Positions 7,637-46,202 of a stretch of 64,000 nt of DNA are shown piece after piece. Each line of letters opens with the position of its first letter. Position 1 is the stretch's first letter. Source of the DNA: Octopus sinensis (lineage: Eukaryota); assembly GCF_006345805.1 (NCBI RefSeq), contig NC_043026.1:10664001-10728000 (forward strand). Reading direction: 5' to 3'. Made by a program: the position numbers and the translations under genes. The notes under the pieces are model-generated. The model saw only the letters and a list, made by a program, of their open reading frames with translations. It was not told the DNA's origin and did no database searches.

Positions 7637-9242
7637 CATGGCCAGAAATAGCAGCCAAATCTCGCACAAACCATAAACATCTCTCATCCACAACTAGAAA
7701 TAGCAGCCAAATCTCGCACAAACCATAAACATCTCTCATCCACAACTAGAAATAGCAACCAAATCTCGCACAAACCATAAACATATCTCATCCACAACTA
7801 GAAATAGCAGCCAAATCTCACACAAACCATAAACATCTCTCATCCACAACTAGAAATAGCAGCCAAATCTCGCACAAACCATAAACATCTCTCATCCACA
7901 ACTAGAAATAGCAGCCAAATCTCGCACAAACCATTAACATCTCTCATCCACAACTAGAAATAGCAGTCAAATCTCGCACAAACCATAAACATCTCTCATC
8001 CACAACTAGAAATAGCAGCCAAATCTCGCGCAAACCATAAACATCTCTCATCCACAACTAGAAATAGCAGCCAAATCTCGCGCAAACCATAAACATCTCT
8101 CATCCACAACTAGAAATAGCAGCCAAATCTCGCACAAACCATAAACATCTCTCATCCACAACTAGAAATAGCAGCCAAATCTCGCACAAACCATAAACAT
8201 CTCTCATCCACAACTAGAAATAGCAGTCAAATCTCGCACAAACCATAAACATCTCTCATCCACAACTAGAAATAGCAGCCAAATCTCGCACAAACCATAA
8301 ACATCTCTCATCCACAACTAGAAATAGCAGCCAAATCTCGCACAAACCATAAACATCTCTCATCCACAACTAGAAATAGCAGCCAAATCTCGCACAAACC
8401 ATAAACATCTCTCATCCACAACTAGAAATAGCAGCCAAATCTCGCACAAACCATAAACATCTCTCATCCACAACTAGAAATAGCAGCCAAATCTCGCACA
8501 AACCATAAACATCTCTCATCCACAACTAGAAATAGCAGCCAAATCTCGCACAAACCATAAACATCTCTCATCCACAACTAGAAATAGCAGCCAAATCTCG
8601 CACAAACAATAAACATCTCTCATCCACAACTAGAAATAGCAGCCAAATCTCGCACAAACCATAAACATCTCTCATCCACAACTAGAAATAGCAGCCAAAT
8701 CTCACACAAACAATAAACATCTCTCATCCACAACTAGAAATAGCAGTCAAATCTCGCACAAACCATTAACATCTCTCATCCACAACTAGAAATAGCAGCC
8801 AAATCTCGCACAAACCATAAACATCTCTCATCCACAACTAGAAATAGCAGCCAAATCTCACACAAACAATAAACATCTCTCATCCACAACTAGAAATAGC
8901 AGTCAAATCTCGCACAAACCATAAACATCTCTCATCCACAACTAGAAATAGCAGCCAAATCTCGCACAAACCATTAACTTCTCTCATCCACAACTAGAAA
9001 TAGCAGCCAAATCTCGCACAAACCATTAACTTCTCTCATCCACAACTAGAAATAGCAGCCAAATCTTGCACAAACCATAAACATCTCTCATCCACAACTA
9101 GAAATAGCAGCCAAATCTCGCACAAACCATAAACATCTCACATCCACAACTAGAAATAGCAGCCAAATCTCGCACAAACCATTAACATCTCTCATCCACA
9201 ACTAGAAATAACAGCCAAATCTCACATAGACATCTCTCATCC
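7637..9242. repeat. Tandem array of a 52-bp monomer, ~31 copies (intron 1 of ZNF-A)
   Basis: Consensus CCACAACTAGAAATAGCAGCCAAATCTCGCACAAACCATAAACATCTCTCAT; no unique spacers. Confidence 0.97.
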
Positions 9243-9441
9243 ATGGCAAGAAATGTTAGGGTTAGGGTTACTTTTTAGGGACCTCTGTATTTAAGTAGTA
9301 CCGAAATAGCAACCAAATCCTGCATAAATTATAGACATCTTCATTCATGAAAGATAGAAGCGAAACAAAGAATCGACGCGCCGAAAGTCGAACGTCCACA
9401 GAATTAAAAGCCACTGAATATCTTCAAAGCTTAATACTTAC

Positions 9442-9595
9442 GAAAATGTTCTTTATAAAGCAGAGTTGTTAGAAGCGTGAGTGTGGTGGTCGAGAAATAT
9501 ATTACAAATGTGCTTTATAAGTAATATAAATGTGTTGAACGGAGATGAAGAGAATTTCCAGCAACGACGGAAACGGAAGTAGGATAGTACATAAT
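9442..9595 (-). promoter_or_regulatory. Putative non-coding exon 1 and promoter of ZNF-A
   Basis: GTAAGT donor at 9441; ETS-like ACGGAAGT at ~9573-9580; collinear similarity to 26107-26240 and 33334-33460. Confidence 0.6.
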
Positions 9596-9605
9596 GGAAG
9601 CACTC

Positions 9606-9947
9606 CGTCGGTTACGACGACGAGGGTTCCGGTTGATCCGAATCAACGGAACAGCCTGCTCGTGAAATTAACGTGTAAGTGGCTGAGCACTCCACAGACA
9701 CGTGTACCCTTAACGTAGTTCTCGGGGATATTCAGCGTGACACAGAGAGTGACAAGGCCGGCCCTTTGAAATACAGGTACAACAGAAACAGGAAGTAAGA
9801 GTGAGAGAGAGTTGTGGTGAAAGAGTACAGCAGGGATCACCACCATCCCCTGCCGGAGCCTCGTGGAGCTTTAGGTGTTTTCGCTCAATAAACACTCACA
9901 ACGCCCGGTCTGGGAATCGAAACCGCGAATCCGCTGCCCTAACCACA
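9606..9947 (-). mobile_element. SINE family D (5'-rearranged copy)
   Basis: 3' ~180 bp is the reverse complement of 55930-56100; remnant of a tRNA-like head at the right end. Confidence 0.8.
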
Positions 9948-10123
9948 TATTTCTATCACCTGATGCTGATTACCTCCCTTTACAAGTATTATATTGCAGA
10001 AGATGGTTTCGTGTGTGTGTAATACAATGATAATCCTTTTTTTACTATAGGCACAAGGCCTTAGATTTTGGGAGAGGTAACCAGTCGTTTACATCGATCC
10101 CCAGTACGCAACTGGTACTTTAG

Positions 10124-10898
10124 AAGGCGGCGAGCTGGCAGAAACGTTAGTATGCCGGGCGAAATGCTTAGCAGTGTTTCGTCTGCCGTTACGTTGTGAG
10201 TTCAAATTCTGCCGAGGTCGACTTTGCCTTTCATCCTTTCGGGGTCGATAAATTAAGTACTAGTTACGCACTGGGGTCGATATAATCGACTTAATACCTA
10301 TGTCTGTCCTCTCTATTTTTAGCCCCTTGTGGGTAGTAAAGAAATAGGTATTTCGTCTGCCGTTATGGTATGAGTTCAAATTCCGCCGAGGTCGACTTTG
10401 CCTTTCATTCTTTCGGTGTCGATAAATTAAGTACCAGTTACGCACTGGGGTCGATATAACCGACTTAATACCTATGTCTGTCCTTGTTTGTCCTCTCTAT
10501 TTTTAGCCCCTTGTGGGTAGTAAAGAAATAGGTATTTCGTCTGCCGTTATGGTATGAGTTCAAATTCCGCCGAGGTCGACTTTGCCTTTCATTCTTTCGG
10601 TGTCGATAAATTAAGTACCAGTTACGCACTGGGGTCGATATAACCGACTTAATACCTATGTCTGTCCTTGTTTGTCCTCTCTATGTTTAGCCCCTTGTGG
10701 GCAGTAAAGAAATAGGTATTTCGTCTGCCGTTACGGTATGAGTTCAAATTCCGCCGAGGTCGACTTTGCCTTTCATTCTTTCGGGGTCGATAAATTAAGT
10801 GCCAGTTACGCACTGGGGTCGATATAATCGACTTAATACTTATGTCTGTCCTTGTTTGTCCCCTCTATGTTTAGCCCCTTGTGGGTAATAAAGAAATA
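10124..10898 (+). mobile_element. SINE family B tetramer (head-bearing unit plus three 184-bp headless units) nested in an older antisense SINE
   Basis: Units start at 10347, 10531 and 10715; 10-bp direct repeat GGTACTTTAG at 10114-10123 and 10899-10908. Confidence 0.9.
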
Positions 10899-11086
10899 GG
10901 TACTTTAGTTGATCGACCCCGAAAGGATGAAAGGCAAAATAGACACCGGCGAAACTTGAACTCAGAACGTAGCGATGGACAAACTGTCGCTAAAAAAAAC
11001 AAGTGTGTGTGTAGTTGCGAGGGATTTGCGTGTGAACAAGACTAATGAAATAGAAAAAAGAAAAAAAAAAGAGATCAACAATATCA

Positions 11087-11478
11087 GGCGCAGGAGTGGC
11101 TGTGTGGTAAGTAGCTTGCTAACCAACCACATGGTTCCGGGTTCAGTCCCACTGCGTGGCATCTTGGGCAAGTGTCTTCTGCTGTAGCCACGGGCCGACC
11201 AATGCCTTGTGAGTGGATTTGGTAGACGGAAACTGAAAGAAGCCCGTCGTATATATGTATATATATATATATGTGTGTGCGTGTATGTTTGTCCCCCTAG
11301 CATTGCTTGACAACCGATGCTGGTGTGTTTACGTCCCCGTTACTTAGCGGTTCGGCAAAAGAGACCGATAGAATAAGTACTGGGCTTACAAAAGAATAAG
11401 TCCCGGGGTCGAGTTGCTCGATTATAGGCGGTGCTCCAGCATGGCCGCAGTCAAATGACTGAAACAAGTAAAAGAGTA
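11087..11478 (+). mobile_element. SINE family A, full length
   Basis: Consensus match. Confidence 0.9.
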
Positions 11479-11479
11479 A

Positions 11480-11960
11480 TATGAAATCCTCAATGGGGAG
11501 GAGACATCGAGGGCTGCTCATGGAAAAACCCCGTAAAAACCATGAGTGCCCTGATTTTTTGGGGCAGGCGCATTTTTTCGTTTCCTTTCCTCTTTCCAAC
11601 TGCACGCGTTCACTCGTACCATTCTCGCCACTTTCATCCACTTTTCGGCAAACTAACTAGAAGACAACACTTCCCTCTCTATTCCTATTTTCCTTTTCAT
11701 CAGGGATTGGCCAAAGAGAAAAGTGTTTGTCTTCAAATCCCTTCATTCTCGTCCACCACACAACTTCTTTTGCCATGGCCACCAGGCATATAAAAACAGC
11801 CTTTCCTTCCTGGCTCAAAACCACTAAAATTAGTGGTGACACGATCAGGTAGCGAAAGTGCTACATTGGAAACTGTGTGAAAAGTGGGGCTAGAGAGAGG
11901 CAAGATGTGGTATAAGCACAAACCGCAAAGAGTGGAGTTGGAGAGTAGCAAAATAAGAAA
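11480..11960 (-). mobile_element. Decayed 3' end of an L1/Tx1-like LINE ORF2
   Basis: Translates as ..AVFICLVAMAKEVVWWTRMKG..KRKIGIEREVLSSS*FAEKW.., resembling Tx1/L1 C-termini from memory of the family. Confidence 0.5.
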
Positions 11961-12459
11961 CATAATAAAGTAGTGTTACATTAACAGTAAACAAACCAAC
12001 CAGAGAACATATGCTATATAAGAAAACTGGTAGTCCGCTATTAGAAAACTATTTGGAAATAGATAAATATATTTAACTTTTTAAGTAGGGATATATAATG
12101 ATAAAACCGTCACTTATAACTTATTTATAAGCGTTATCATTATACGTAAATCCTGACTCCAGCTACATAAACGCCATAGCGAGAAATATACTTTCTGGAA
12201 TGCTAATGGACATTAATCGTGCATGTATGTTAAATATGAATAATTTTGTGTTCTTTTAACCGCTATAAAAAAAATACAGTTTCATAATTACAGAAATACA
12301 TTTCATTAATAAGTTGAAGAAAGAGAAAATAATTTTTACATTATTTTATTATATACATATAGCATTTTTAATATTTATATACAATTTGAAGTAAATAATT
12401 TTGTCGTAGAGAATTACGACTTAATATTTTAGCTAATTCTTCATTCTAGCTATAATAGA

Positions 12460-13740
12460 TCCTGTACAACTACCACAAACACATTATACTTTGTTAACCT
12501 TCTTGTAGTTCCATTGCACCTATTATGTGTCCCTATTCAGCACTGAGTATACCATATGGAATTTCTACCTGCACCTTCACTACAAAGAATCTAGGACCAT
12601 TTACCCAAATGGATTAGAGAACTGTCTGTTTTCTTGATAACTAGAACCTTGGTCTTGGCTAAGTTAACTTAAAGACTCTTGCAGGCTTTGTGTTCACACC
12701 TGAAATTTCATTTCTGAATCTACTACAGTTTCAACAATAAGGATGAAGTTATCAGCATAGAGGAGTTCTCATGAACAACCAGTCTTAAATTTTTCTGGAA
12801 TTTTGCAGCAGCCACAGATCTAGCCTGGAGCCTTCAGTTGGTTGTCTCATGGCACCAACACTGTCGCATTTTTATGTGGAAATAAACATCAGCAGGGTCA
12901 CCTTGTTAGACAAACACCCTACAATTACATTATATTTGCTTACCTAGGTAATAAAAAGACCACTTTCTCAAACAAGGCCATCTCCTTAAAAGGATTTATA
13001 ATTTGTTTGCTTTCCTACTTACTACAACTTTGGTCTTTCCTAACTTAAGTCTAAGGCATTTTGATTCCAGACATGTCCACATCTGAAACCTATTATGTAA
13101 CTTGAGTAAAGAATTAGCTATAAGAACAAAATCACAGATCTAGAGGAGCTCCTAAAACCACCTCACCTTAAATTCCTGTTATGACCTGAAGGACTATGAT
13201 AAATAAGAGGGAGCTGAGACCTTGGTGACCTCCTACTTGTACACTAAATTTAGTTAAACACTCTTTGCTAACTTTTACCTTACTGACATTATCCCTGGAT
13301 ATGGCTTGTATGGTATTCATCTCTTCCCAGCTTCCACATTGACCACCAGATAAGGGAGTGAGGAACCCTGTCAACAGCTTTTTCCATGTTTACAAAAGCC
13401 AAGTACAGAGATTAATCTGTTGCTGAATTTTTATCCAGCAGTTGCCTTACTAGGAAGATAGCTTCTTCCAGGAACAAAACCAAACTGCATCTCATGTAAT
13501 TCAACTCCCTTCCTAATTACATAGGATGTGACCCTGACAAAAACAGGATGGAGTTGAAAAGCTTTTATCCTCAATTTTATTAAGATAATCTAGATGCTTG
13601 TAAACTTTCATCTGCTAGTTTTAGTATAAAAAAAACAATTCTTCAGAAAGTTAAGAGAAAACAGTCTGTTGTGGGGCCCTAAACCATAGTTATGCCACAT
13701 GTTTGTTAGTGGTATCTTCCATTTTGTTATGGAGGTCATT
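12460..13740 (-). mobile_element. Two tandem decayed RTE-clade LINE fragments (RT domain)
   Basis: LYLAFVNMEKA, QVGGHQG..LLFIIVLQ, ELLYADNFIL and VNLAKTKVLV motifs with stops and frameshifts; the YADD-to-Cys-rich segment occurs twice. Confidence 0.85.
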
Positions 13741-13819
13741 TCTTATTTATATATTTGACAAATTCACATATGGCTTTGAAAAAAACCATAAACATTTAAA
13801 ACTTAAGGAATAAATATAT

Positions 13820-14035
13820 AGATTTGGCTGTGGAAACCATGCCAAATCAGACTGGAGTTTGGTGAAGCCCCTCAGCTGACCAGCCCTGATCAAGCTGATC
13901 AACCCATGCCAGCATGGACATCATCATCATCATCATCGTTTAACGTCCGTTCTCCATGCTAGCATGGGTTGGACGTTTCGACCGGGGATCTGGGAAGCCA
14001 GAAGGCTGCACCAGGCTCCATTAAATGATGATGAT
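13820..14035. mobile_element. Young family C SINE fragment (-) nested in the tail of an older (+) copy
   Basis: (CAT)n-CGTTTAACGTCCG tail at 13918; the older copy's TTAAATGATGAT tail resumes at ~14021. Confidence 0.7.
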
Positions 14036-14549
14036 AAATTAGGGAAGTGATATTCAACAAAGAGCCATGTACAGGGTTGCAAGTAGGAGGAATTTCAATA
14101 TAGAGATCATGGGAAATGAAATGGAAATGGAAGCAAAGGATGAAGCTGGGAGAAAATTTTAGAATAAAAATGCAAAAACTGAAAATTTTGGAGTCGTAAT
14201 GTCTTTTACATGAAACGCAGGAATATTAAAAAGAAAAGAAATTTACAATGGAACCCATACAAACTAGCTCTTTCCTTTCTCATCCGTCTGAATGCATTTG
14301 TGTGCAGTTGATTTATTAATTAATTCAGTGAATGATTTACTAGTGTAATGGCTTTTCTTTTGTATGAATACGCTTGTGTGAAGGCAATGTACAATGGTCA
14401 GAGAATGATTTAATGCACATCAGAGAGATATGGTTTCTCTCCTGTATCAATAAGTTTGCACATAGTTAGGTTAACACTTTCATCAAATGGTTTTAAACAG
14501 ATATCTCGACAATATGGTCTCTCTGCTGAATGAAGACATTTGTGCATTA

Positions 14550-14648
<99 letters not shown>

Positions 14649-14679
14649 CTATGATTTAGTAGACATCATTGTAGTATTA

Positions 14680-14988
<309 letters not shown>

Positions 14989-16110
14989 TTAACCACAAAT
15001 ATCACAGTGATATGGAGTCTCTCCTGTATGAATACGTCTGTGCATAATGAAGTTACCACTATAACAGAATGATTTACCACAGACATCACAGTGATAAGGC
15101 TTCTCTCCTGAATGAGTACGTTTGTGTGTAGATAATGTACTAATGTCACTGAATGATTTACCACAGATATCACAGTGATATGGTTTCTCTCCTGTATGAA
15201 TACGCTTGTGTGTAGTTAAAGCACTACTAACAGTGAATGATTTATCACAGATATCACAATGGAATGGCTTCTCTCCTGTATGAATACGTTTGTGTGCAGT
15301 TATGCCACTACTCTGAGAGAATGATTTACCACAGATATCACAATGATATGGTTTCTTTCCTGTATGAATGTGTATGTGTGAAGTTAAATGACTACTGTAA
15401 GAGAATGATTTACCACAGATATCACAATGATATGGCTTCTCTCCTGTATGAATACGTCTGTGTTTTGTTAAAGTACTATTTCGAGAGAATGATTTATCAC
15501 AGACATCACAATGATATGGTTTCTCTCCTGTATGAATACGTTTGTGTTCTGTTAGGTCAGTGTTTCCAGAGAATGATGAACCACAGACATCACAATGATA
15601 TGGTTTCTCTCCTGTATGAACACGTTTGTGCATAATGAAGTTAATACTCCTATCACGGAATGATTTACCACAGACATCAAAGTGATATGGTTTCTCTCCT
15701 GTATGAATACGTCTGTGTTTGGTTAAAGCACTACCAACAGTGAATGATTTATCACAGATATCACAATGGAATGGCTTCTCTCCTGTATGAATACGTTTGT
15801 GTGCAGTTATGCCACTACTCTGAGAGAATGATTTACCACAGATATCACAATTATAGGGTTTCTCCCCTGTATGAATGCGTATGTGTGAAGTTAAGGCACT
15901 ACTTTGAGAGAATGATTTACCACAGATATCACAATGGTATGGTCTCTCTCCTTTATGAATATGTTTGTGTTTGGTTAAGTGACTTTTCTTAGTGAATGAT
16001 TTACCACAGACATCACAATCATATGACAACTTTTGTCTCTCTTTTATCATGTCTTCATGAGAAATCAGTTCTTTAAGCTTCTTACTCATTTCCATTATTA
16101 TTGTTTTCAA
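14989..16110 (-). CDS. C2H2 zinc-finger protein ZNF-B, 373 aa, 12 fingers (one degenerate), truncated; possible pseudogene
   Basis: Ends ..YHCDICG* where paralogous fingers read CGK (AAA>TAA); one finger has Cys>Phe and an extra codon. Confidence 0.85.
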
Positions 16111-16573
16111 ATTACAATGTACACATACTTTTCTTGTTTTTTGTTCTTATCGTTCAATCGTATATATACTTCCACTGTTGTCTTTTTGGCCAGTTATCTT
16201 TCTCTAACAACACTTTTGTAAAGCTATCCAAGTTTACATTCAGTCAGTGATGTGCAAAACTTTTGCTAATAATAACATATTAGGACAAATATTTCACAGA
16301 AATATATAAGATTTATAGAAACAGTGTTATAAATCTGTTTTATATCTCATTTTCTTTTAGTCTTAAAAGATGATAAATATTGAGAATGTATCTTCTGTTA
16401 AGCAAATGTCATTTGATATTCTGAAATAATAAAGAAACAACAGTGTAAGATAAAGAGACTGCTTTAAAAATACAGATTCAATAGTGGAAAATTTACAGCA
16501 TTTCTACAGAGATAAACTTTAGTAGAAATAAACATTTACGTGAATGACTGAACTTTTTAATGTATTAAAATTT

Positions 16574-17371
16574 ACAGGCACCCATGCCAACCCTCTTTGC
16601 TTGCGAAGACATGTTGGGGCAAGCGAAAGCGAAATCGAAATCGAATTGAACCAGCCAGGATCCCTGGTCTGGTGGTACATAAAAAGCACTATCTGACTCG
16701 TGGCCGATGCCAGTGCCGCCTCCACTGGCTTCCGTGCCGGTGGCACGTAAAATACACCAATCCGACCGTATGACAGGCACCCATGCCAACCCCCTTTGCT
16801 TGCGAAGACATGTTGGGGCAAGCGAAAGCGAAATCGAATTGAACCAGCCAGGATCCCTGGTCTGGTGGTACGTAAAAAGCACTATCCGACTCGTGGCCGA
16901 TGCCAGCGCCGCCTCCACTGGCTTCCGTGCCGGTGGCACATAAAATACACCAATCCGACCGTATGACAGGCACCCATGCCAACCCCCTTTGCTTGCGAAG
17001 ACATGTTGGGGCAAGCGAAATCAAAATCAAATTGAACCAGCCAGGATCCCTGGTCTGGTGGTACGTAAAAAGCACTATCCGACTCGTGGCCGATGCCAGC
17101 GCCGCCTCGACTGGCTTCCGTGCCGGTGGCACATAAAATACACCAATCCGACCGTGGCCATTGCCAGCGTCACCTGGCACCTGTGCAGGTGGCACGTAAA
17201 AAGCACCCACTACACTCACAGAGTGGTTGGCGTTAGGAAGGGCATCCAGCTGTAGAAACATTGCCAGATAAGACTGGAGCCTGGTGCAGCCTTCTGGCTT
17301 CTCAGATCCCCGGTCGAACCGTCCAACCCATGGAGAACGGACGTTAAACGATGATGATGATGATGATGATG
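16574..17371 (+). mobile_element. SINE family C with a triplicated ~195-bp 5' module
   Basis: Modules start at 16574, 16773 and 16966; GGACGTTAAACGATGATGAT tail; absent at the homologous site of A, C and D. Confidence 0.9.
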
Positions 17372-17415
17372 ATCACAGAATTTTGTGTGTAGCTTACATG
17401 TTTGTAAACCGCAGC

Positions 17416-18090
17416 TTTGCTAGCTATGCTGATGACACAAAAGTCACTCAGACAATTCAGAATCCTCGACATATTGTACATCTGCAACTGGAGTTGGACG
17501 CAATTTACAGGTGGGCCCAGGACAACAACATGCAGTTTAATGCAGGAAATTTCCAAGCCCTGCACAACCGGCACACAAAGCTGAATGACAAGCAGACTGG
17601 ATAAATTAGCCTGAGAGGAATTACAATCCCTGAATCAAAATCAGTGCATGATTTGGGTACTGACACGAGTAATGATGCATCATTCTAGGTGCATGTTACG
17701 AATTTTGGTAATAAAATGCAGACGGCTAGCTGAATAGATCCTCTGAACTTTCAGAACAAGAGTAGAGCAAACAATAATGGTCCCTTGGAAGACAAATATC
17801 CTCAGGCACTTGGACTACTGCTCTTAACTATGGTCAACACAGTATAAAATTAACAGCGAAACTTGAAGCAATCCAACGGAGCTACACAAAGAAAACCGTC
17901 TTAATGCAATGTATGAGCTACTGGAGTTAACACACTTCTCCCTAGAATGAAGGCAGGAAAGTTATGCAGTAATATACATCTGGAAAATTCTGAAACATTG
18001 GCATTGAATGTTACATAAATAGCAGAATGGGGCACCATTGCACAGTGTCAAAGACTCTACCATTACCATCAAAAAACAGGACCAGATTGA
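17416..18090 (+). mobile_element. Decayed CR1/L2-group LINE ORF2 fragment
   Basis: FASYADDTKV..LQLELDAIYRWAQDNNMQFN, later ..HLDYCS*LWS..LEAIQRSYTKK..YAVIYIWKIL. Confidence 0.85.
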
Positions 18091-18094
18091 AGAG

Positions 18095-18640
18095 TATACA
18101 TTCTTCGCATGGCGTTCCCTATTTGGTTGTGGTTGGGCCTTTTCTCCTTCACCAAGCTAACATCTACAATACTTAACATTTTGAAAAAAGGCTCACTTTT
18201 CATCACTGGTTACCAGTCTATCCATAGAGGGTGAGATGAGTTCACAAGAAAGAAAAGAGCAGATGTCCACTTGGGATTTGCAGTTGGCTTCAGACAAATC
18301 ATGAGGTACCCATTTTCCAAGCTGTCGAAGATGGTGGTGAACAGTTGAATGGCTGGAACAAAGCTTACTAGCTAATTCTTCAAATAAAACTGCATGATCT
18401 TTTCTGCCAAAAAGAGCTTGTCTTCAAACTCAATTGGACGTCCTGTTTGGGCCTCATTTGCAAGGCTGAAAATGAGGCTCCACTTCTGAATTTTACAAAT
18501 CATCTTTTGCGGTTTTTTCATTCAGGCACTCTTCTCTATAAGCTGAGGGAATATTTTGAGTTACTTCGGCTGCAGAGTTCCCTTTTTAAAACCCAAAGTA
18601 TTATGTGCCTCAAATATTCCTTAGACACCTCCATGTTTGA
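18095..18640 (-). mobile_element. Decayed mariner transposase, N-terminal half
   Basis: MEVSKEYLRHII..TGRPIEF..SHSTVHHHLRQLGKWVPHDLSE..DRLVTSDEK* (WVPHEL motif and first catalytic D). Confidence 0.85.
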
Positions 18641-18689
18641 AGTTATAACTAGTAAAATTTCAATTAGTAATCTGCTACCAAAAAAGTAA

Positions 18690-19500: not shown

Positions 19501-19516
19501 ATTGGAGATCATTGTT

Positions 19517-19850: not shown

Positions 19851-20308
19851 TGTTTGAAAAACCCTAACAGTGAAGTATTTGAAATTTAATAATGAATAAA
19901 TACACAGTAAATTAGGGACATGATATTCAACAAAGAGCCATGTGTAGGGTTGCTAGGAGGAGGAATTTCAATATAAAGGTTCCTACATCATGGGAAATGA
20001 AACAGGAATGGAAGCAACTGATGGAGCTGAGAAAAAATTTTAAAAGAAAGGAAGAAGAAAAACTGAGATTTTTGGAGAAACATTATTTTCATTGTTGTGA
20101 TGTCAATTACATGAAACGGGAACATTGAAAAAAAAAAAGCAAGTTTACAAAAGAACCAATACAAAATCGCATTTTCCTTTCTCCCCAGTATGAATACATT
20201 TATGTGCAGTTAATTTACTATTTTCAGTGAATGATTTACCAGTGAAATGGCTTCACTTTTGTATGAATACATTTGTATGAAGTCAAGGCACGATGGTCAG
20301 ACAATGAT

Positions 20309-21757
20309 TTAGAAGGCATCACTTTGATATGGAATCTCTCTTGCATGAATATGTTTGTGTTTAGTTAGGTTACTATTTTGAGAGAATGATTTGCCACAGA
20401 TGTCACAGTGATATGGCTTCTCTCCTGAATGAAGACGCACATGTCTAGTTAAATGACTACGATCAGAGAATGAATTACCACAGACATTGCAACAATATGG
20501 CTTCTCTCCAGTATGAATACGTTTATGTCTAGTTAAGCTATCACTTTTAGTGAAGGATTTACCACAGATATCACAGTCATATAGTGTCTCTCCAGAATGA
20601 AGACGTTTGTGTGCAGTTATCTCACTACTCTTAGAGAATGATTTACCACAGATATCACAATGATATATCTTCTCTCTTGCATGAATATATTTGTGTGCAG
20701 TTAAGTTACTACTGTCAGAAAATGATTTACTACAGATATCGCACTGATATGGTCTCTCTCCTGAATGAATACGTTTGTGTCTAGTTAAAGTACTTCCTAC
20801 AGTGAATGATTTACCACAGATATCACAATGATATGGCTTCTCTCCTGTATGAATACGTGTGTGTAAATATAAGTGACTATAGCCAGAGAATGATTTACCA
20901 CAGATAGCACAATGATATGGTTTCTCTCCTGAATGAAGACGTTTGTGTTGAGTTAAAGCACAACCAACAGTGAATGATTTGTCACAGATATCACACTGAT
21001 ATGGCTTCTCTCCTGTATGAAGACGTCTGTGTTTAGTTAAAGTACTACTAACAGTGAATGATTTACCACAGATATCACAATGATATGGTCTTTCTCCTGT
21101 ATGAATACGTATGTGTGAAGTTAAGCTACTACTGTCAGAGACTGATTTACCACAGATATCACAATGGTATGGTTTCTCTCCTGTATGTATACGTTTGTGA
21201 GCAGTAAAGCTAGTACTGTCAGAGAGCGATTTACTACATATATCACAATGATATGGTCTTTCTCCTGAATGAAGACGTTTGTGCTGAGTTAAAGCACTAC
21301 CATCAATGAATGATTTGTCACAGATATCACAATGATATGGCTTTTCTCCTGTATGAATACGTATATGTGTAGTTAAGTGGCCACTCTTAGAGAATGATTT
21401 GTCACAAATATCACAATGATATGGTCTCTCTCCTGTATGAACACGTTTGTGCACAACTAAGTGACTGTTTCGAGAGAATGATTTACCACAGATATCACAA
21501 TGAAATGGTTTTTCTCCTGTATGAATACGTCTGTGTTCTGTTAAGTGACTATTGTGAGTGAATAATTTACCACAGACATCACATTCACATGACAATTTTC
21601 GTCTCTTTTTTATCATGTCTTCATGGGAAATCAATTCTTTAAGCTTCTCATTCTTTTCCATTATTAATGTTCCCAAATCACAACGTATAAATACTTTGCT
21701 TTTTTTGTCCTTATCATTTAATCTTATGAATACTTCCACTGCTGTATTTCTGTCCAA
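20309..21757 (-). CDS. C2H2 zinc-finger protein ZNF-C, 482 aa, 15 fingers
   Basis: 56-aa leader + 15 x 28 aa + YQSDAF*. Confidence 0.95.
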
Positions 21758-22544
21758 TAATGATGATAAGGATAATGATGTTACCTTTCTCTAGCAACAC
21801 TTATGTAAATTCATCTTCTCGACACTTCAGTCAGAGATGTACAAAAATTCTCCAATAATATCAGATTACAACTTCTACCACAGATTTGTAGTAACACTTT
21901 TAAACATGTGCCGTGTATAGCACATTCATTTGGTCTTCAAATAATTTTAAATATTCACAATATTTCTTCTGTTATGTCAATGTCATATAATATCCTGAAA
22001 TAAAGGAAGAAACATCAGTGTAAGATACAGAGGTAACTTTAAGAATATAAATTCAACAGTGGATAATTTAGATTACTGTAGAGATAAACTTAAGAAACAA
22101 ACATTTACCTGAACAACTGAACTTTTTAATGTATTAAAATTTATATTACAGAATTTTCTGTGTAGCTTTGTAAACCACAGTTATGCCTTCATATTGTGTA
22201 ATATTATTTAGATTAAACTGCAGAATGGATATCAATAACATTATTTTCTCTCCTGAAATATAATTTGGCATTGTTGTCTAGCCCTGAAGAAGCTCTGAGT
22301 AAAACTATGATTAAAGACATTCCATCCATGAACATCCTTTCCTCTGTAGCATTGTATATCTAGGATTACACCATCCAATACAGTCTTTAATATTTATGAC
22401 CAAAAGGTGATATTTAAGAGAGATGTGCTCTTATTTCTAGTAGATTGTGTGACCACATACAGAACTATGAAGAAAACTATGTTCTTTTCACAGGTCCAAC
22501 CATTTTATTACAATACAAACAAAAATAACATTAACTACGTTAAA

Positions 22545-22990
22545 CTTACAAATTACAATTTTCTCAAGAAAGCCAAGAGGAAAAAATGTTTTATTTTGAC
22601 ACATTCTACCAGTATACAAGGTTTAAAAGTGTTTAGTTAACTAGAAATTGTGTTGAAAACTGCCGTTCAAAAGGAAAAGATCCACATCTTTTCTCTTGGC
22701 TCTATTGAGAAAATTCTATAGTTTGTAAGATATGTTGTTTTTTTCTTCAATTTCAACCAATCAGTGACGTCTATAGAGGTAGAAAAAAAAAAACATTCCA
22801 TGCCATATGAATATGTCCCTCGTTTAAGAAACAGATTGGGTTTATTTACATTTGTGAAGAAAAAAAAGATACCCTTCCCCCCCACCCCTAACCCTAAAAC
22901 AGATTGAAATGCAATAGATCGATACTAGGGTCATAATTATGGGTGACAATTTCATATGACACTGCTAGAAAAAACTGCTGTTCAAACCGA
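22545..22990. mobile_element. Two opposed fragments of the 1886-2258 MITE family
   Basis: 22545-22683 matches its right part in + orientation; 22690-22990 matches its left part reverse-complemented. Confidence 0.8.
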
Positions 22991-23367
22991 AAAGATCCAA
23001 AAATTATTTACTCTGTGTAAAAAAAATTATTTACTTTGTTTAACCCCCCCCCCCCCATTTTATTTGATATATATTCAGCTTTTACATACATCCATGTTTT
23101 GTGCATGCGCGCATCTATTAATTTGCATACGCGCACACGCGCTTGGTAGTCGTTGTAGGACGACGTCACGACGAGCTAGCGCGGATCGGGACCCCCTCTA
23201 CTTGAATAGTATCCAATAAAGTATTGGTTTCTGAATATTTCAGTGGTTGGAGTGCGTTTGAGATTATTTCTCAAACAAACAAACTAACGGGGCGACGATG
23301 GAGTGTAGAAAGTAGCTTCTATAGCTATAAATTGCAGCCAAATCACGTAGAAATCAGACATTTCTCT

Positions 23368-26027
23368 TCCATAGCTAGAAATAGCAGCCAAATCTTGCAC
23401 AAATCATGGACATCTTTCATCCATAGCTAGAAATGACAGCCAAATCTTGCACAAATCATAGACATCTTTCATCCATAGCTAGAAATGACAGCCAAATCTT
23501 GCACAAATCATAGACATCTTTCATCCATAGCTAGAAATGGCAGCCAAATCTTGCACAAATCATAGACATCTTTCATCCATAGCTAGAAATGACAGCCAAA
23601 TCTTGCACAAATCATAGACATTTTTCATCCATAGCTAGAAATAGCAGCCAAATCTTGCACAAATCATAGACATCTTTCATCCATAGCTAGAAATGACAGC
23701 CAAATCTTGCACAAATCATAGATATTTTTCATCCATAGCTAGAAATGACAGCCAAATCTTGCACAAATCATAGACATCTTTTATCCATAGCTAGAAATGA
23801 CAGCCAAATCTTGCACAAATCATGGACATCATTCATCCATAGTTAGAAATGACAGCCAAATCTTGCACAAATCATAGACATCTTTCATCCATAGCTAGAA
23901 ATGACAGCCTAAATCCTGCACAAATCATGGACATCTTTCATCCATAGCTAGAAATGACAGCCAAATCTTGCACAAATCATAGACATCTTTCATCCATAGC
24001 TAGAAATGACAGCCAAATCTTGCACAAATCATAGACATCTTTCATTCATAGCTAGAAATGACAGCCAAATCTTGAACAAATCATAGACATCTTTCATCCA
24101 TAGCTAGAAATGACAGCCAAATCTTGCACAAATCATGGACATCATTCATCCATAGTTAGAAATGACAGCCAAATCTTGCAGAAATCATAGACATCTTTCA
24201 TCCATAGCTAGAAATGACAGCCTAAATCCTGCACAAATCATGGACATCTTTCATCCATAGCTAGAAATGACAGCCAAATCTTGCACAAATCATGGACATC
24301 ATTCATCCATAGTTAGAAATGACAGCCAAATCTTGCACAAATCATAGACATCTTTCATCCATAGCTAGAAATGACAGCCTAAATCCTGCACAAATCATGG
24401 ACATCTTTCATCCATAGCTAGAAATGACAGCCAAATCTTGCACAAATCATGGACATCATTCATCCATAGTTAGAAATGACAGCCAAATCTTGCACAAATC
24501 ATAGACATCTTTCATCCATAGCTAGAAATGACAGCCAAATCTTGCACAAATCATAGACATCTTTCATCCATAGCTAGAAATGACAGCCTAAATCCTGCAC
24601 AAATCATGGACATCTTTCATCCATAGCTAGAAATGACAGCCAAATCTTGCACAAATCATGGACATCATTCATCCATAGTTAGAAATGACAGCCAAATCTT
24701 GCACAAATCATAGACATCTTTCATCCATAGCTAGAAATGACAGCCTAAATCCTGCACAAATCATGGACATCTTTCATCCATAGCTAGAAATGACAGCCAA
24801 ATCTTGCACAAATCATGGACATCATTCATCCATAGTTAGAAATGACAGCCAAATCTTGCACAAATCATACACATCTTTCATCCATAGCTAGAAATGACAG
24901 CCTAAATCCTGCACAAATCATGGACATCTTTCATCCATAGCTAGAAATGACAGCCAAATCTTGCACAAATCATAGATATCTTTCATCCATAGCTAGAAAT
25001 GACAGCCAAATCTTGCACAAATCATAGACATCTTTCATCCATAGCTAGAAATGACAGCCAAATCTTGCACAAATCATGGACATCATTCATCCATAGTTAG
25101 AAATGACAGCCAAATCTTGCACAAATCATAGACATCTTTCATCCATAGCTAGAAATGACAGCCAAATCTTGCACAAATCATAGACATCTTTCATCCATAG
25201 CTAGAAATGACAGCCAAATCTTGCACAAATCATAGATATCTTTCATCCATAGCTAGAAATGACAGCCAAATCTTGCACAAATCAGACATTTTTCATCCAT
25301 AGCTAGAAATGACAGCCAAATCTTGCACAAATCATAGACATCTTTCATCCATAGCTAGAAATGACAGCCAAATCTTGCACAAATCATGGACATCTTTCAT
25401 CCATAGCTAGAAATGACAGCCAAATCTTGCACAAATCATAGACATCTTTCATCCATAGCTAGAAATGACAGCCAAATCTTGCACAAATCATAGACATCTT
25501 TCATCCATAGCTAGAAATGACAGCCAAATCTTGCACAAATCATAGACATCTTTCATCCATAGCTAGAAATGACAGCCAAATCTTGCACAAATCATAGACA
25601 TCTTTCATCCATAGCTAGAAATGACAGCCAAATCTTGCACAAATCATAGACATCTTTCATCCATAGCTAGAAATGACAGCCAAATCTTGCACAAATCATA
25701 GACATCTTTCATCCATAGCTAGAAATGACAGCCAAATCTTGCACAAATCATAGACATCTTTCATCCATAGCTAGAAATGACAGCCAAATCTTGCACAAAT
25801 CATAGACATCTTTCATCCATAGCTAGAAATGACAGCCAAATCTTGCACAAATCATAGACATCTTTCATCCATAGCTAGAAATGACAGCCAAATCTTGCAC
25901 AAATCATAGACATTTTTCATCCATAGCTAGAAATGACAGCCAAATCTTGCACAAATCATAGACATCTTTCATCCATAGCTAGAAACGACAGCCTAAATCC
26001 TGCACAAATCATGGTCATCTCTCATTC
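23368..26027. repeat. Tandem array of a 52-bp monomer, ~51 copies (intron 1 of ZNF-C)
   Basis: Consensus CCATAGCTAGAAATGACAGCCAAATCTTGCACAAATCATAGACATCTTTCAT. Confidence 0.97.
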
Positions 26028-26106
26028 ACAAAAGATAGAAGAGACACAAAGAACCGAAAGCTTTCAATATTAAAAAAATTGAATAGTTTCATTGTTTAGT
26101 ACTTAC

Positions 26107-26240
26107 AGAAATGTTTCATTAAGGATAGTGTTGTTATAAATGCGAGCATAATGTGTATTGAATGTATTAAAAGTGTGGGAATTACGAGAAATTTAAGTAA
26201 GAGGCAATTACGGAAGTACGTTTAATGCACATGCGCATGT
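26107..26240 (-). promoter_or_regulatory. Putative non-coding exon 1 and promoter of ZNF-C
   Basis: GTAAGT donor at 26106; ACGGAAGTA (ETS-like) at ~26210 and GCACATGCGCATG (NRF1-like) at ~26227-26239. Confidence 0.65.
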
Positions 26241-26317
26241 TTTATACGGAATGTTTACGGTAGCTATCATTTGTTACTTCCCTTTAATTTCCACAATTCT
26301 GCTGTCTCGCCGACCCT

Positions 26318-26543
26318 GGCGAGTTGGCAGAAATGTTAGCACGCCGGGTGAAATGCGGCTACGCATTTCGTCTGCCGTTACGTTCTGAGTTCAAATTCCG
26401 CCGAGGTCGACTTTGCCTTTCATCCTTTCAGGGTCGATAAATTAAGTACCAGTTACGCACTGGGGTCGATGTAATTGACTTAATCCCTTTGTCTGTCCTT
26501 GTTTGTCCACTCTGTGTTTAGCCCCTTGTGGGCAATAAAGAAG
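26318..26543 (+). mobile_element. SINE family B monomer
   Basis: TGGCGAGTTGGCAGAA head, GAGTTCAAATTCC box B, CATCCTTTCAGGGTCGATAAATTAAGTACCAG core. Confidence 0.9.
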
Positions 26544-26670
26544 TATATCTATAATTTACTGGGACGTGAACACACCAACACGTGTTGTCGAGTGATGGTG
26601 GGGTAGAAATACAGATACACATAGATATACATATATAAATATATACACACTCAGACATATATATATATAT

Positions 26671-26819
26671 ATATAAATACAGTGTACATTTAAACACCTA
26701 AGAGGTATCCATCATAGGATTCCTTTCACGCTAGAAGGAACAGCTAAAATCAAGCCACTAGCGTGGAAGAAGTTCTATGATGGATACCTCCTGTGTTTAA
26801 ATGTATACTGTATTTATAT
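26671..26819. mobile_element. Palindromic MITE (~65-bp arms)
   Basis: ATATAAATACAGTGTACATTTAAACAC..GAGGTATCCATCATAG mirrored at 26760-26819. Confidence 0.8.
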
Positions 26820-26909
26820 GAATAATATATAGTCTATTGACTAATTTTTCTACACGCTAGGCTACAGGTAGTAAAAATTTCTAAAATCTATATTACCCTG
26901 ATATTATTA

Positions 26910-27475
26910 TTATTATTGAGTGAGAGAGCAGTGCATGCGATCAAAGTGACACTGGGGTAAAATATACGAAGCTCGGTATACCCATCATGACTACCCGTCT
27001 GATAAGGGTACACCAGGCACATACATCATAACCACATGTGCGCGACATAGTGATCTCATATCAAGATAAACAGTGCATGACCTTACAGGTGGGGGCCCAG
27101 TTAGAATTTCCTTCTGGTCGAGTAGCCCATCCCGCTCAAAAGGTCCCTGAATAAGGATTATTTAGGGATGTTGAACAAACCACCCATGTTTCCAAAGGTG
27201 AATTATCCAAACCTCCAAGAATTCCTTTCAACACATGACTATGATGCTCCCCCACTACTTCTGCTCGTGATCAGAGATGCACATATCGTCTGCCACTAAG
27301 GGACATGCTCAACTGGTTAAAGTCAAACAACTAACAAGCAAATCTGTGGTATTGAGCAGAATATTTGCTGTAGCCCATCTTTTATACCAAGACAAAACAA
27401 TGTACATTATAACACTCCCAATCAGTTAAAATCTGAAGCCACGAGAGCCACTGCTTGGTACTGCATCAGGGCATT
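26910..27475 (-). repeat. Unclassified interspersed repeat bounded by (TAA)n
   Basis: GC-richer block with ATT-repeat ends, resembling a common octopus repeat from memory; single copy here, so unverified. Confidence 0.4.
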
Positions 27476-27489
27476 TATTATTATTATAA

Positions 27490-28990
27490 TATATATATAT
27501 GATGGACTGTCCCGTCGGTTTCGACGTATGAGGCACCGAGAACGTACTCTTTCTGTGCCAGTTGTAATACTTATATAGAATGTGACATTTAAGTCCCACC
27601 AACGATTTGCCAGGAAGGCCACAGTTGTTGCAAGTATGAGGATTACAGGTCAGTGCAGGTGGTATATTTACAGTAGCTTTGATCCTTTGCCTCACACCCC
27701 AAAGCCTGTTAATGCTAGTTGTAACAAAGGTTTCAATACCATTTTGACAACGATCTCCATTTTGTTCATTCCAAGACTGTTCGCTATCTTCATCTCTAAG
27801 AGGTTACGTTTCAGTTTGTCCTTATATCTGAGCCATGGTCGACCAACATTCCTCTGCCCACTCTTAAGCTGGCTTTACATGAGAACTAAGAGTATTCTCT
27901 CGTTACTCATTCTGATGACATGGCCGGCCCAGCAAAATTGTGATTGTATAAGGAAGCTCTCAATTCCACCAATTTGCTAAACAAATCTGCATTAAAAACT
28001 TTGTCTTTTAGTGAATATCCGCAGATTGTCCTTAGACTGTGTAAGATGTCTTTCTCTTTTTACTTGTTTCAGTCATTTTGACTGCAGCCATGCTGGTGCA
28101 CCGCCTTTAATCGAGCAACTCGACCCTGGGACTTATTCTTTGTAAGCCCAGTACTTATTGTCGGTCTCTTTTTGCCGAACCGCTAAGTTATGGGGACATA
28201 AACACACCAGCATCGGTTGTCAAGCAATGCTAGGGGGACAAACACAGACACACACATACATATATACGACGAGCTTCTTTCAGTTTCGTCTACCAAATCC
28301 ACTCACAAGGCTTTGGTCGGCCCGAGGCTATAGTAGAAGACACTTGCCCAAGGTGCCACGCAGTGGGACTGAACCCGGAACCACGTGGTTGGTAAACAAG
28401 CTACTTACCACACAGCCACTCCTGCGCAGTCTATTGGGTATCCACGTTTCTGAGCCATACAAGAGAGTAGTAAGAATGGCTGATTTGTAGACCTGTACTT
28501 TGGTGTCAAGTTTCCTGCTCCTTTCCTTCCATATGCGATGACGGAGTTTGTCAACTGCGTTGGTTACCTTTGGGAGACGATTTCATCATCAGGGGGAGCG
28601 TTCAAATTCACTTTACTACCAAGATATGTAAATGACTTCTCATAATTTAGGCTTTTCCCTTCAACCTGTATAGGTATGTTAGGAAAATTGCGAACCGGTA
28701 GCCTCTGCTTGACACCGAACTTGTTTCGGAGTAAGGCAAGGATTACTTCCGTCTTCTTTATGCTGATGGTTAAACCAAAGGCTTTACATGCAGCAGAAAA
28801 CCGGTATAGAAGTTCCCGACCTCCCTCTGCGAAAAGTAGATCACGAATAATACTGGTGCGTAGCAGTATTTTGGCTTTGAAACGCTGATGATTGCATAGT
28901 CCACCACTTGTTTGAAACTGGAATTTGACACCACTTTGTATGTCGCAAAAAGCATACCTCAGCATCACTGAAGAGTGCAAACAAAATAGG
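27490..28990 (-). mobile_element. Decayed RTE/BovB-like LINE 3' portion, interrupted by a family A SINE (28054-28427, -)
   Basis: ACKAFGLTISIKKTEV, FTYLGS, TKVQVYKSAILTTLLYGSETW, WAGHVIRM, GRPWLRYKDKLK and a terminal CxxC..GLKCH knuckle. Confidence 0.9.
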
Positions 28991-29512
28991 GGCCATATTA
29001 TGCCTTTTGTACATATTTGACTTTATTGAATTCCTCTGTATGGAAAAGCAATAACTTCTGCTATTACAAACATATTTAATGAGTGAAGCAATTAAAAATT
29101 AATAAACAATAAATATGCAGTAAATTGTGGAAGTGATATTCAACAAAGAACCGTGTTTAGGGTTGCTAGGAAGAAGGGTTTTAGTGTAGAAGTCCCTACA
29201 TCATGGGAAAGAAAAAGGGCTTGGAAGTAGAGGAGAGTGATGGGTGAAAATATAAAGAGAAAAAAACTGAAACTTTTGGAAATACTTTATTTTCAAAGTT
29301 GTAACATCCATCACATGAAACATGGGAATATTGAAAAGAAAACAAATGCTTACATTAAAACAAACTCCCCTTTTCCTATCTCTCCTGTACAAATATGACA
29401 GGGTGCAGCTAATTTACTACTTTCTGTGAATGATTTACTACTGAAAGAACTTCTCTTTTGTATGAATATGTTTGTGTGAAGTACTACCATCAAGACTGAT
29501 TTAGTACCGACA

Positions 29513-31039
29513 TCACAGTGAAATGGTCTCTCTCATATGAATATGTTTGTGTCTAGTTAAAGAACAACTTACAGTGAAGGATTTACCACAAATATCACAA
29601 TGATATGGTGTCTCTCCTGTATGAATACGTTTGTGTATAGTTAAGTTACCATTTTGAGAGAATGATTTACCACAGATATCACAATAATATGGTTTCTCTC
29701 CTGAATGAAGACGTTTGTGTGTAGTTAAAGCACTATTTTCCATGAATGACTTACCACAAGTACCACAATGATATGGCTTCTCTCCTGTATGAATACGTTT
29801 GTGTTTAGTTAACTGATGCCTTTTATGGAATGATTTACCACAGATATCACAGTGATATGGCCTCTCACCTGTATGAATACGTTTGTGTGTAGTTAAGTAA
29901 TATCTTTTAGGGAATGATTTACCACAGATATCACAGTGATACGGCATCTCTGCTGAGTGAATAAGTTTGTGTGTAGTGAAGTTGCTACTGTCAGAGAATG
30001 ATTTACCACAGACATCACAATGATATGGTTTCTCTCCTGAATGAAGACGTTTGTGTGTAGTCAAAGCACTACTTTCACTGAATAATCTACCACAAGTATC
30101 ACAAGGATATGGCTTCTCTCCTGTATGAATACGTTTGTGTGGAGTTAAGTTACTACTCTTAGAGAATGACTTACCACAGATATCACAATGATATGGCTTC
30201 ACTCCTGTATGAGTACGCTTGTGTTCAGTTAATCTACTACTTACAGTGAACGCTTTACCACAGATATCACAGTGATATGGTTTCTCACCTGAATGCAGAC
30301 GTTTGTGTGCTGTTAAAGAACTACTTTCAGTAAATGACTTGCTACAGATATCACAGTGGTATGGCTTCTCCCCTGTGTGAATACGTTTATGTGCAGCTAA
30401 AGTACTGCTTACAGTGTATGATTTACCACAAACATCACAATAGAATGGCTTCTCTCCTGAATGAACACATTTGTGCTTAGTTAAGTGACTACTTTGAGAG
30501 AATGATTTATTACAGTTATCACAGTGATGGGGTGTCTTTCCCATATGAATATATTTGTGTCTACTTAAGGTACTACTTTGAGAGAATGATTTATCACAGA
30601 TATCACAGTGATGTGGCTTTTCTCCAGTATGCGTAAGTCTGTGTGAAGTTAATTTACAACTTTGAGAGAACGATTTACCACAGATATCGCAGATATATGG
30701 CTTCTCCCCTGTATGAGTACGTTTGTGAGTATTCAGGTTACTTTTTTGAGAGAAGGACTTATTACAGATGTCACAACAATATGGCATCTCTCCTGTATGA
30801 ATACGTTTATGTCTAGTTCTGTCAATACTGCGAGTGAAAGACTTACCACAGATATCACAGTGATATAGCGTTTCTCTTGTATGAATATGTTTGTGTTCAG
30901 TTAGGTTACTTTTTTGAGAGAAAGACTTTTTACAGACATCACAATTATATGACAAATTTTCTCTCTCTGTCATATTTCCATGGGGATGGGAAATCAATTC
31001 TTTAAGCTTTTCACTCTTTTCCATGATATTTCTTCTCAA
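29513..31039 (-). CDS. C2H2 zinc-finger protein ZNF-D, 508 aa, 17 fingers
   Basis: 30-aa leader + 17 x 28 aa; ends through a 2-nt slip in a GA run (GAGACCATTTCACTGTGA). Confidence 0.95.
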
Positions 31040-31609
31040 ATCACAATGTACATATATTTTTCTTGTTTATTCTTATAAATACTTCCAGTACTTCATATCT
31101 GTCCACCGTTACTTTTCTCTATCAACACTTATGTAAATGTATCCAAATTTACTCAGTACACAAACTCATCTTGTAGACATTCCAGTCAGTGATGTTCAGA
31201 ACTTTTGCTAATAATCGCAGATCAGAGCAAATATTTTCTATGGTATCTACCATAGGTTTAAAGAAACAGTTTTATATATTTGCTCTGTATAAAATTTTCT
31301 TTTAGTCTTTATAGATGATAAATATCAAGAATGTGTCTTCACTTATTCCAATGTCATTTGATATTCTGAAATAATAAAGAAACAATAGTGTAGATATAGA
31401 GGTTACTTAAAATATACAGATTCAACAATGGAAAATTTACATTTCTAGAAACTGTAGAAATAAACATTTACCTGAACAATTGAACACTTTCATTAATTCA
31501 AATTTACATCACAGAATCTTGTGAATAGCTTATATATTTGTAAATCACAAACACACCTCTTTACACTGTATAATATTATTTAGATTAAATCAGAAAATAG
31601 GGGCAACGA

Positions 31610-31940
31610 TGGAGTGTAGAAGGTAGCTTCCATGGCTAGAAATAGCAGCCAAATCTCGCCCAAATTATAGACATTTCCATAGCTAGACATAGTAGCCAAA
31701 TTTCACACAAATCAACAGACATCTCTCATCCATTGCTAGAAATATCGGCGAAAGTACAGAATACGCACACCCGGTGGCTTAGGGTTAAGGTTACGCTGAA
31801 AATGGGTAGTATGCATATTCTTTACTTCCGCCGAAATAGCAACCAGTTCACGCACAAATCATAGATAGCTCTCATCCATAGCTAGAAATAGCAGCCAACT
31901 CACGCACAAATAATAGACATCTATCACCCATAAAAGACGG
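31610..31940. repeat. About 4 degenerate 52-bp-family monomers with an ~85-bp hairpin insertion (intron 1 of ZNF-D)
   Basis: GCTAGAAATAGCAGCCAA cores with the same left flank (AACGATGGAGTGTAGAAGGTAGCTTC) as arrays A and C. Confidence 0.85.
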
Positions 31941-32436: not shown

Positions 32437-32468
<32 letters not shown>

Positions 32469-33302: not shown

Positions 33303-33333
33303 AGATTAAGTATTTCCGTTGTTGAATACTTAC

Positions 33334-46165: not shown

Positions 46166-46202
46166 TTTAATCTTAATTTTGTAGGTAGACCTTCCGTTTT
46201 CA

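Follow-up and report, generated by a model that had tools for sequence, protein, structure and literature searches.

The stretch of Octopus sinensis DNA analysed here (contig NC_043026.1 of assembly GCF_006345805.1, positions 10,664,001 to 10,728,000; 64,000 nucleotides in all, hereafter the window, which is one assembled haplotype) holds four tandem C2H2 zinc-finger (ZNF) genes, A, B, C and D, all on the minus strand according to its list of open reading frames (ORFs). Genes A, C and D each carry a tandem array of a 52-bp unit close behind a conserved splice donor. These arrays are a minisatellite with array-specific homogenisation and a transposon-related unit, and both kinds of repeat are well described. 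The explanation we favour, and regard as likely, is that the minisatellite was inherited with the ancestral gene of this ZNF subfamily, expanded again in A and C independently, and has been decaying elsewhere. No published description of the 52-bp repeat was found in literature searches, and its link to a transposon is a new observation here.

Structure of the 52-bp arrays

Arrays were detected with Tandem Repeats Finder, followed by a profile search built from the units. At a period of 52, the former returned 30.4 copies with 97% matches in gene A (7644-9223), 52.0 copies with 95% matches in gene C (23321-26025) and 1.9 copies in gene D (31833-31932). The profile search identified 31, 52 and 4 monomers respectively, in agreement with the copy counts of an earlier sequence-only reading of the window, which had also described the copies in D as degenerate. 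The components of the arrays, to which no strand is assigned, are as follows.

7644-9255: array A, 31 monomers of 52 bp, 13 of which match the consensus exactly
9256-9302: spacer in array A, 47 bp, containing TTAGGGTTAGGG
9303-9347: degenerate monomer nearest the donor of gene A, beyond the 47-bp spacer
23321-26029: array C, 52 monomers, 22 of which match the consensus exactly
31636-31932: array D, 4 decayed monomers, at 31638-31737 and 31833-31932

The arrays are 1.6 kb (A), 2.7 kb (C) and 0.3 kb (D) long, and a 52-bp unit repeated head to tail over 0.3-2.7 kb is of minisatellite size. The final monomer of array A (9204-9250) is shortened and has kept ancestral bases. At the centre of array C a higher-order unit of three monomers (157 bp) recurs, and the third of this array that is proximal to the donor is almost wholly consensus. 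Array D is split by a spacer of ~95 bp (31738-31832). The flanks of the arrays are homologous among A, C and D on both sides. In the rest of the window the profile search found the unit only as single partial copies, at ~46547 and 47216.

The 47-bp spacer of array A is itself a fragment of a small palindromic element, which is also present at 46202-46262 and, in degenerate form, at 31775-31795. This element carries telomere-like TTAGGG repeats, and (TTAGGG)2 is also found at 1987 and 22886. The palindromic element is present just after the donor of copy E, an orphan copy of the exon-1 block described below. The TTAGGG fragment interrupts both array A and array D and is therefore taken to be an old shared insertion, lost from array C.

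Homogenisation and direction of change

The consensus units of A and C differ at eight of their 52 positions (7, 8, 20, 28, 33, 40, 48 and 50), all of the differences being transitions, and each of these diagnostic sites is fixed in 30-31 of the 31 A monomers and in 48-52 of the 52 C monomers. The distance of a monomer to its own consensus is 0-2 changes in A and 0-3 in C, save for edge monomers at 6, 7 and 9. Alignment of the monomers therefore reproduces the eight fixed differences and the within-array variation of 0-3 that the sequence-only reading had noticed. Median pairwise divergence is 1.9% inside array A and 3.8% inside array C, and ~19% within the arrays of D and of V1 and V2, the last two being Octopus vulgaris genes introduced below. 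The A and C consensuses diverge by 15% and the flanking intron of the two genes by 14-26%. In a neighbour-joining tree, all 30 scorable A monomers form one pure clade and 51 of the 52 C monomers another; the monomers of V1 and V2 interleave, each pairing with its positional partner in the other array. Units diverging by 1.9-3.8% within and 18% between arrays, eight near-fixed sites and pure clades together make up the pattern of concerted evolution.

The polarity of the changes was established with D and the O. vulgaris genes V1 and V2 as outgroups. All of these are identical at the eight diagnostic sites, and four changes therefore fall on the A lineage (28 T>C, 33 G>A, 48 T>C, 50 G>A) and four on the C lineage (7 A>G, 8 G>A, 20 C>T, 40 C>T), with the D consensus equal to the inferred ancestral unit. 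Ancestral bases are kept at the edges, in the final unit of A and in the first two and the final units of C, as is expected if exchange homogenises the interior of an array. As judged from the monomers, re-amplification in A and C was both recent and independent. The independent expansion with concerted evolution that had been suggested from the letters alone is supported by these four derived changes in each array and by their reciprocally pure clades, the separation of A from C units having emerged in just the kind of monomer tree that was proposed as a check. As to mechanism, the patterns of divergence, edge monomers and higher-order repetition point to unequal exchange or slippage.

Gene conversion between the A and C arrays was also considered and was rejected because the eight differences are fixed.

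Position of the arrays within the genes

The ZNF ORFs span 3251-5173 (A), 14989-16110 (B), 20309-21757 (C) and 29513-31039 (D), all on the minus strand, and every one of them is built from an 84-bp finger repeat. The genes are as follows.

3251-5173, minus strand: ZNF-A coding exon, 640 amino acids, 22 C2H2 fingers (ORF list and finger count)
14989-16110, minus strand: ZNF-B, a 5′-truncated copy, without exon-1 block and without 52-bp unit
20309-21661, minus strand: ZNF-C coding exon, 450 amino acids from the ATG, 15 fingers
29513-31024, minus strand: ZNF-D coding exon, 503 amino acids from the ATG, 17 fingers

In Pfam, ZNF-D shows C2H2 domains only. Protein homology was queried with ZNF-A, a 62-amino-acid N-terminal piece and V2; the results of the two long queries were dominated by vertebrate ZNFs, to the point that V2 was missing from them, and octopus matches came from the short query only. 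For ZNF-A and ZNF-D, a search for exact matches gave no result. The best informative matches of the window ZNFs are zinc-finger proteins of O. vulgaris, O. sinensis and Octopus bimaculoides.

In the sense of the genes, each array is preceded by a conserved block that contains a palindrome of the GCGCATGCGC type and ends in an invariant CGTAAGTA donor. The known copies of this block, and an insertion that follows it in gene D, are listed below.

9390-9627, minus strand: exon-1/promoter block of gene A, ending in the conserved GTAAGTA donor at 9435-9441
26056-26240, minus strand: exon-1/promoter block of gene C, with GCGCATGTGC motif and the GTAAGTA donor at 26100-26106
33295-33464, minus strand: exon-1/promoter block of gene D, with GCGCATGCGC palindrome and the GTAAGTA donor at 33327-33333
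45962-46185, plus strand: orphan exon-1/promoter block copy E (the sixth copy), in opposite orientation to the genes, donor decayed
L002 5561-5806 and 11175-11412, strand not given: exon-1 blocks of V1 and V2 in O. vulgaris, from sequence conservation
32004-33303, no strand assigned: insertion between donor and array of gene D, with ~358-bp inverted repeats (98% identical) and an 8-bp target duplication, AGATTAAG

Another conserved stretch, which has candidate AG acceptors, begins ~100 nt before each ATG. Because of the conserved donor, the promoter-like block and this stretch before the ATG, the arrays very probably lie at the 5′ end of intron 1. The first monomer is reached ~77 nt after the donor in C and ~90-95 nt after it in A, where it is the degenerate monomer; the main array of A begins at ~185 nt. 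In D the array is ~1.4 kb from the donor, ~1.3 kb of this being the inserted element, and a distance of ~95 nt is restored when the insertion is disregarded. Mapping of the donors is therefore consistent with the placement in the sequence-only reading, which had put the arrays 80-200 bp past the donor in A and C and ~1.4 kb past it in D. The insertion at 32004-33303 was named Merlin-like in that reading, which is taken here as a provisional superfamily label.

The statement that each full paralogue carries its own version of the repeat holds true in the window, gene B being 5′-truncated and without an array. Of the gene, this copy keeps only the exon with the fingers and the 3′ portion of the intron, its intron homology ending at 16576 against a 193-bp tandem element, and it has no 52-bp array because its whole 5′ end is missing.

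A candidate promoter motif of the ZNF subfamily is the GCGCATGCGC-type palindrome, situated ~190 nt upstream of the exon-1 donor. C, D, E, V1 and V2 have all kept it, and in A it is not evident. Downstream of the orphan copy E, homology to a ZNF exon or intron was looked for and none was found. Copy E lies ~320 bp from the transposon described in the next section; as a single case this proximity is suggestive and proves nothing.

Relation of the unit to a MITE-like element

The partial unit matches at ~46547 (plus strand) and 47216 (minus strand) turned out to be the inner ends of inverted repeats that belong to an element resembling a miniature inverted-repeat transposable element (MITE).

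46476-47281, no strand assigned: MITE-like element of ~800 bp, with inverted repeats of ~131 bp (46476-46606 and 47156-47281) that are 85% identical

Homology to the 52-bp unit is found at the inner ends of both inverted repeats (46536-46584 and 47178-47226). A second copy of the element, ~540 bp in length, was identified in O. vulgaris (L001, 1170-1705), the inverted repeats of the two copies measuring ~95-131 bp. Each of the four ends of these two copies can be aligned with the ancestral unit for 38-49 bp, and the local alignments score 25-28 compared with 10 ± 2 for shuffled sequence. The unit is accordingly homologous to part of a mobile element (38-49 bp), as in repeats derived from transposons, and on these alignments the common ancestry of the unit and the transposon inverted repeat may be taken as solid. 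The arrays are neither inside nor continuous with a copy of the element, as no transposon ends or target duplication bound them. In the literature, the more usual direction is for a transposon end to give rise to a tandem repeat (PMC4079207, PMC3879986, PMC6947457, PMC12628747).

Paralogues in Octopus vulgaris and the wider sample

For comparison, nine loci (202 kb) round octopus ZNF fragments were taken from O. vulgaris and O. sinensis assemblies. The 52-bp array is carried by two genes, V1 and V2, at one of these loci (L002, on O. vulgaris chromosome OX597842.1). They share with the window genes the exon-1 block, the invariant donor, the 3′ intron and a similar N-terminus (MEKSEKLQELI...), and the distance from the start of the array to the donor is also the same. 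V1 has 12-14 units and V2 has 7. The flanks of the two genes (intron and coding parts) are ~96.5% identical and their copy number differs two-fold, a difference that, on this comparison, shows the array to be unstable. The part comprising exon 1 and the array is only ~86% identical between V1 and V2 (L002 5500-8300 versus 11100-15600). An insertion of 2.2 kb follows the array in V2.

The 52-bp unit was not found in ~21 other octopus ZNF arrays in the 202 kb from O. vulgaris and O. sinensis, and it is therefore an ancestral feature of one subfamily and not of octopus ZNF genes generally. Whether such arrays are spread without any association with ZNF genes, as the sequence-only reading had allowed for, was sampled in the 266 kb now available, in which arrays occur only at the ZNF subfamily, with a lone unit-like copy in each inverted repeat of the dispersed element. 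The longest array measures 2.7 kb, and arrays of the unit are absent from the ~21 ZNF arrays and from the rest of the 266 kb. The arrays, being short and local, are not classical satellite DNA, nor are they carried by an intact mobile element.

The favoured explanation and its alternatives

Under the favoured explanation, in the gene from which one octopus C2H2-ZNF subfamily descends, a minisatellite would already have been present ~95 nt into intron 1, its unit most likely originating as a fragment of the MITE-like element that started duplicating in tandem. Tandem gene duplications would have copied the array along with the gene, and after separation of the genes, slippage or unequal exchange would have re-amplified one local variant per array, to 31 units in A and 52 in C. 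The short array would meanwhile decay in place in D, V1 and V2, and in B it would have been lost with the 5′ end. That the array predates the gene duplications is shown by comparison of the five genes, because its site and flanks are the same in A, C, D, V1 and V2. A function is not required by the data, and if expression is affected at all, this would be incidental to the presence of a repeat of 1.6-2.7 kb beside the promoter.

Some observations weigh against this explanation. The array flanks were compared with the outer repeat and the interior of the MITE-like element and no homology was found, for which reason the direction from transposon to satellite is unproven. In the decayed arrays, mismatches amount to 9% at unit positions 1-30 and 17% at positions 31-52, and much of the match between unit and transposon falls in positions 1-30. 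The better preservation of these positions could reflect constraint, although non-independence of the monomers has to be borne in mind and part of the difference may come from the way they were aligned. A further point comes from a scan for predicted ZNF binding sites, for which the recognition code (canonical helix positions -1, 3 and 6) was fixed before the results and was applied to 57.9 kb on both strands. The best predicted site of ZNF-D lies in the unit-like motif of the right transposon repeat, at 47195, and matches 30 of 47 specified bases (z = 6.0).

These last two observations are what might be expected if the array were a cis-regulatory platform, that is, a multimerised transposon-derived motif bound by ZNFs of the subfamily, whose length sets promoter feedback or titrates the proteins. 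This is an unlikely reading, but it has several points in its favour. The array is within ~100 nt of the first donor and beside a conserved promoter-like block. The top nine predicted sites of ZNF-D also include the left transposon repeat and D's own array, and when the order of its fingers was permuted, 0.4% of permutations reached 30 (p = 0.004). Among 19 octopus ZNF ORFs with at least 8 fingers, the top predicted site falls on the transposon motif in two, ZNF-D and V2, both of them members of the subfamily, and predicted scores on the motif are higher in the subfamily than in the 13 others (one-sided p = 0.014).

Against this platform, however, the recognition code is crude, V2 has no exceptional predicted score, and the triplet frames of the V2 and ZNF-D sites differ. 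The O. vulgaris copy of the transposon reaches 25/47 for ZNF-D, tied with many other sites, and the ancestral, A and C consensus units reach only 20-22/47. ZNF-A and ZNF-C gave no signal on their own arrays in the recognition-code scan (z 3.0-3.6; permutation p 0.09 and 0.12), and the arrays of D, V1 and V2 decay freely. The pairing of ZNF-D with the transposon motif is a lead and a weak hint of predicted binding; it does not support gene-specific self-recognition. A role at the RNA level was likewise not indicated, as the RNA of the unit, on both strands, folds no better than shuffled sequences (z between -1.4 and +1.4) and Rfam gave no match in the window. Having neither a stable fold nor an Rfam family, the arrays do not resemble a tandem cluster of non-coding RNAs of the microRNA or small nucleolar RNA type. 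The sequence-only reading had speculated that the repeat is a gene-specific variable number tandem repeat (VNTR) tuning expression, or an autoregulatory landing pad for the ZNF proteins of the cluster. Given the decay in D, V1 and V2, the absence of an RNA fold or Rfam match and the lack of signal for ZNF-A and ZNF-C, this speculation is not supported.

It is very unlikely that long arrays are ancestral and have been kept in length by selection under constant turnover, with the arrays of D and O. vulgaris being secondary contractions. Constant unequal exchange would also yield array-specific fixed differences and ancestral edge monomers. However, short and old arrays (4-14 units, ~19% divergence) make up three of the five, V1 and V2 retain monomer-by-monomer orthology, and the pure consensus blocks of A and C, together with the higher-order repeat of C, point to recent bursts. 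Mis-assembly is common at tandem repeats, but it is highly improbable that the arrays or their lengths are artefacts of assembly: the arrays of A and C both hold many distinct variants in non-periodic order with ordered edges, their 1.6 and 2.7 kb are shorter than typical long reads, and an independent assembly, that of O. vulgaris, has related arrays at the same site. That each gene received a repeat-bearing mobile element by an insertion of its own, an idea which the relationship of the unit to a transposon repeat might bring to mind, is scarcely credible. It is rejected on account of the shared flanks: five genes are identical in insertion point, in orientation and in the flanks on both sides, and the arrays lack a bounding target duplication or transposon ends.

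Other repeats in the window

The final part of the window (57980-64000) consists of a ~6-kb (TAA)n microsatellite of ~2,000 copies, with a guanine-cytosine content of ~4-6%, which runs to the window end. Tandem arrays with units of 184 bp and 193 bp are located at 10177-10902, 56470-56840 and 16574-17155, and these units are also found dispersed in the window and in the O. vulgaris loci; it is the 193-bp array that marks the end of the intron homology of copy B. There is also a 518-amino-acid ORF on the minus strand (38135-39691) with weak, sub-threshold matches to a MULE transposase and a ZSWIM RNaseH-like domain (E ~4e-4 to 6e-4), which is probably the relic of a Mutator-like transposase.

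Comparison with known systems and significance

In minisatellites and VNTRs, unequal exchange or slippage keeps the units of an array alike, a process known as concerted evolution. The octopus arrays resemble them in having a unit of tens of bp, lengths of 0.3-2.7 kb and an identity within arrays that far exceeds that between paralogous arrays, as well as edge repeats that escape homogenisation and a higher-order repeat. They differ in that a VNTR is defined by variation among individuals, whereas here paralogous loci of one genome are compared.

Tandem repeats derived from transposon ends or MITEs have been described (reviewed in PMC6947457 and PMC12628747), examples being Tetris of Drosophila virilis (PMC4079207) and DTC84 of the clam Donax (PMC3879986), and molluscan genomes are known for links of this kind between satellites and mobile elements. 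As in these, the octopus unit is homologous to part of a transposon inverted repeat. However, the octopus arrays are not bounded by transposon ends, their flanks are without transposon homology, and they occupy one fixed genic site instead of being dispersed with the element.

With regard to regulation, the length of a VNTR downstream of human ZNF558 switches the gene on or off, with experimental support (bioRxiv 10.1101/2020.08.18.255562). The octopus arrays are similarly tandem repeats in cis to a polydactyl ZNF gene and differ in length between close relatives, but the human unit is 7.46 kb long whereas the octopus unit is 52 bp and its arrays very probably lie in intron 1. ZNF274, with KAP1 and SETDB1, binds the 3′ exons of human ZNF genes (PMC2999557, PMC4939920), which recalls the landing-pad idea of a ZNF protein on repeated sequence inside ZNF genes. 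The human target is, however, the finger-coding 3′ exon and depends on KRAB and KAP1, whereas ZNF-D has only its C2H2 domains and its binding is a prediction. By analogy, these precedents suggest that regulatory roles are possible, but the size of the unit, its position and the protein machinery all differ.

A 70-90-bp tandem repeat is reportedly enriched in ZNF clusters in the Albertin 2015 octopus genome paper, and this may simply be the 84-bp finger repeat.

The number of C2H2 ZNF genes in octopus is roughly 1,800-2,300 (PMC6279123), and transposons are predicted targets of their products (PMC10547256). Within this large family, the locus provides a worked example of an intronic repeat that is inherited across tandem duplicates, decays in some of them and is re-amplified independently in others, and its arrays of 4, 31 and 52 units form a natural length series. 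ZNF-D and the ~50-bp motif shared by the transposon repeat and the unit are a concrete candidate pair, which matters more only if the weak hint of binding holds. On a broader and decidedly doubtful model, slightly less probable to us than the regulatory platform, the ZNF subfamily would have evolved to recognise the inverted repeat of the MITE-like element and would carry a multimerised form of this target beside its own promoters, so that ZNF dosage would be tied to transposon recognition through a feedback or titration loop set by the length of the array. If true, such a loop would be a KRAB-independent invertebrate counterpart of the ZNF-on-ZNF control of mammals.

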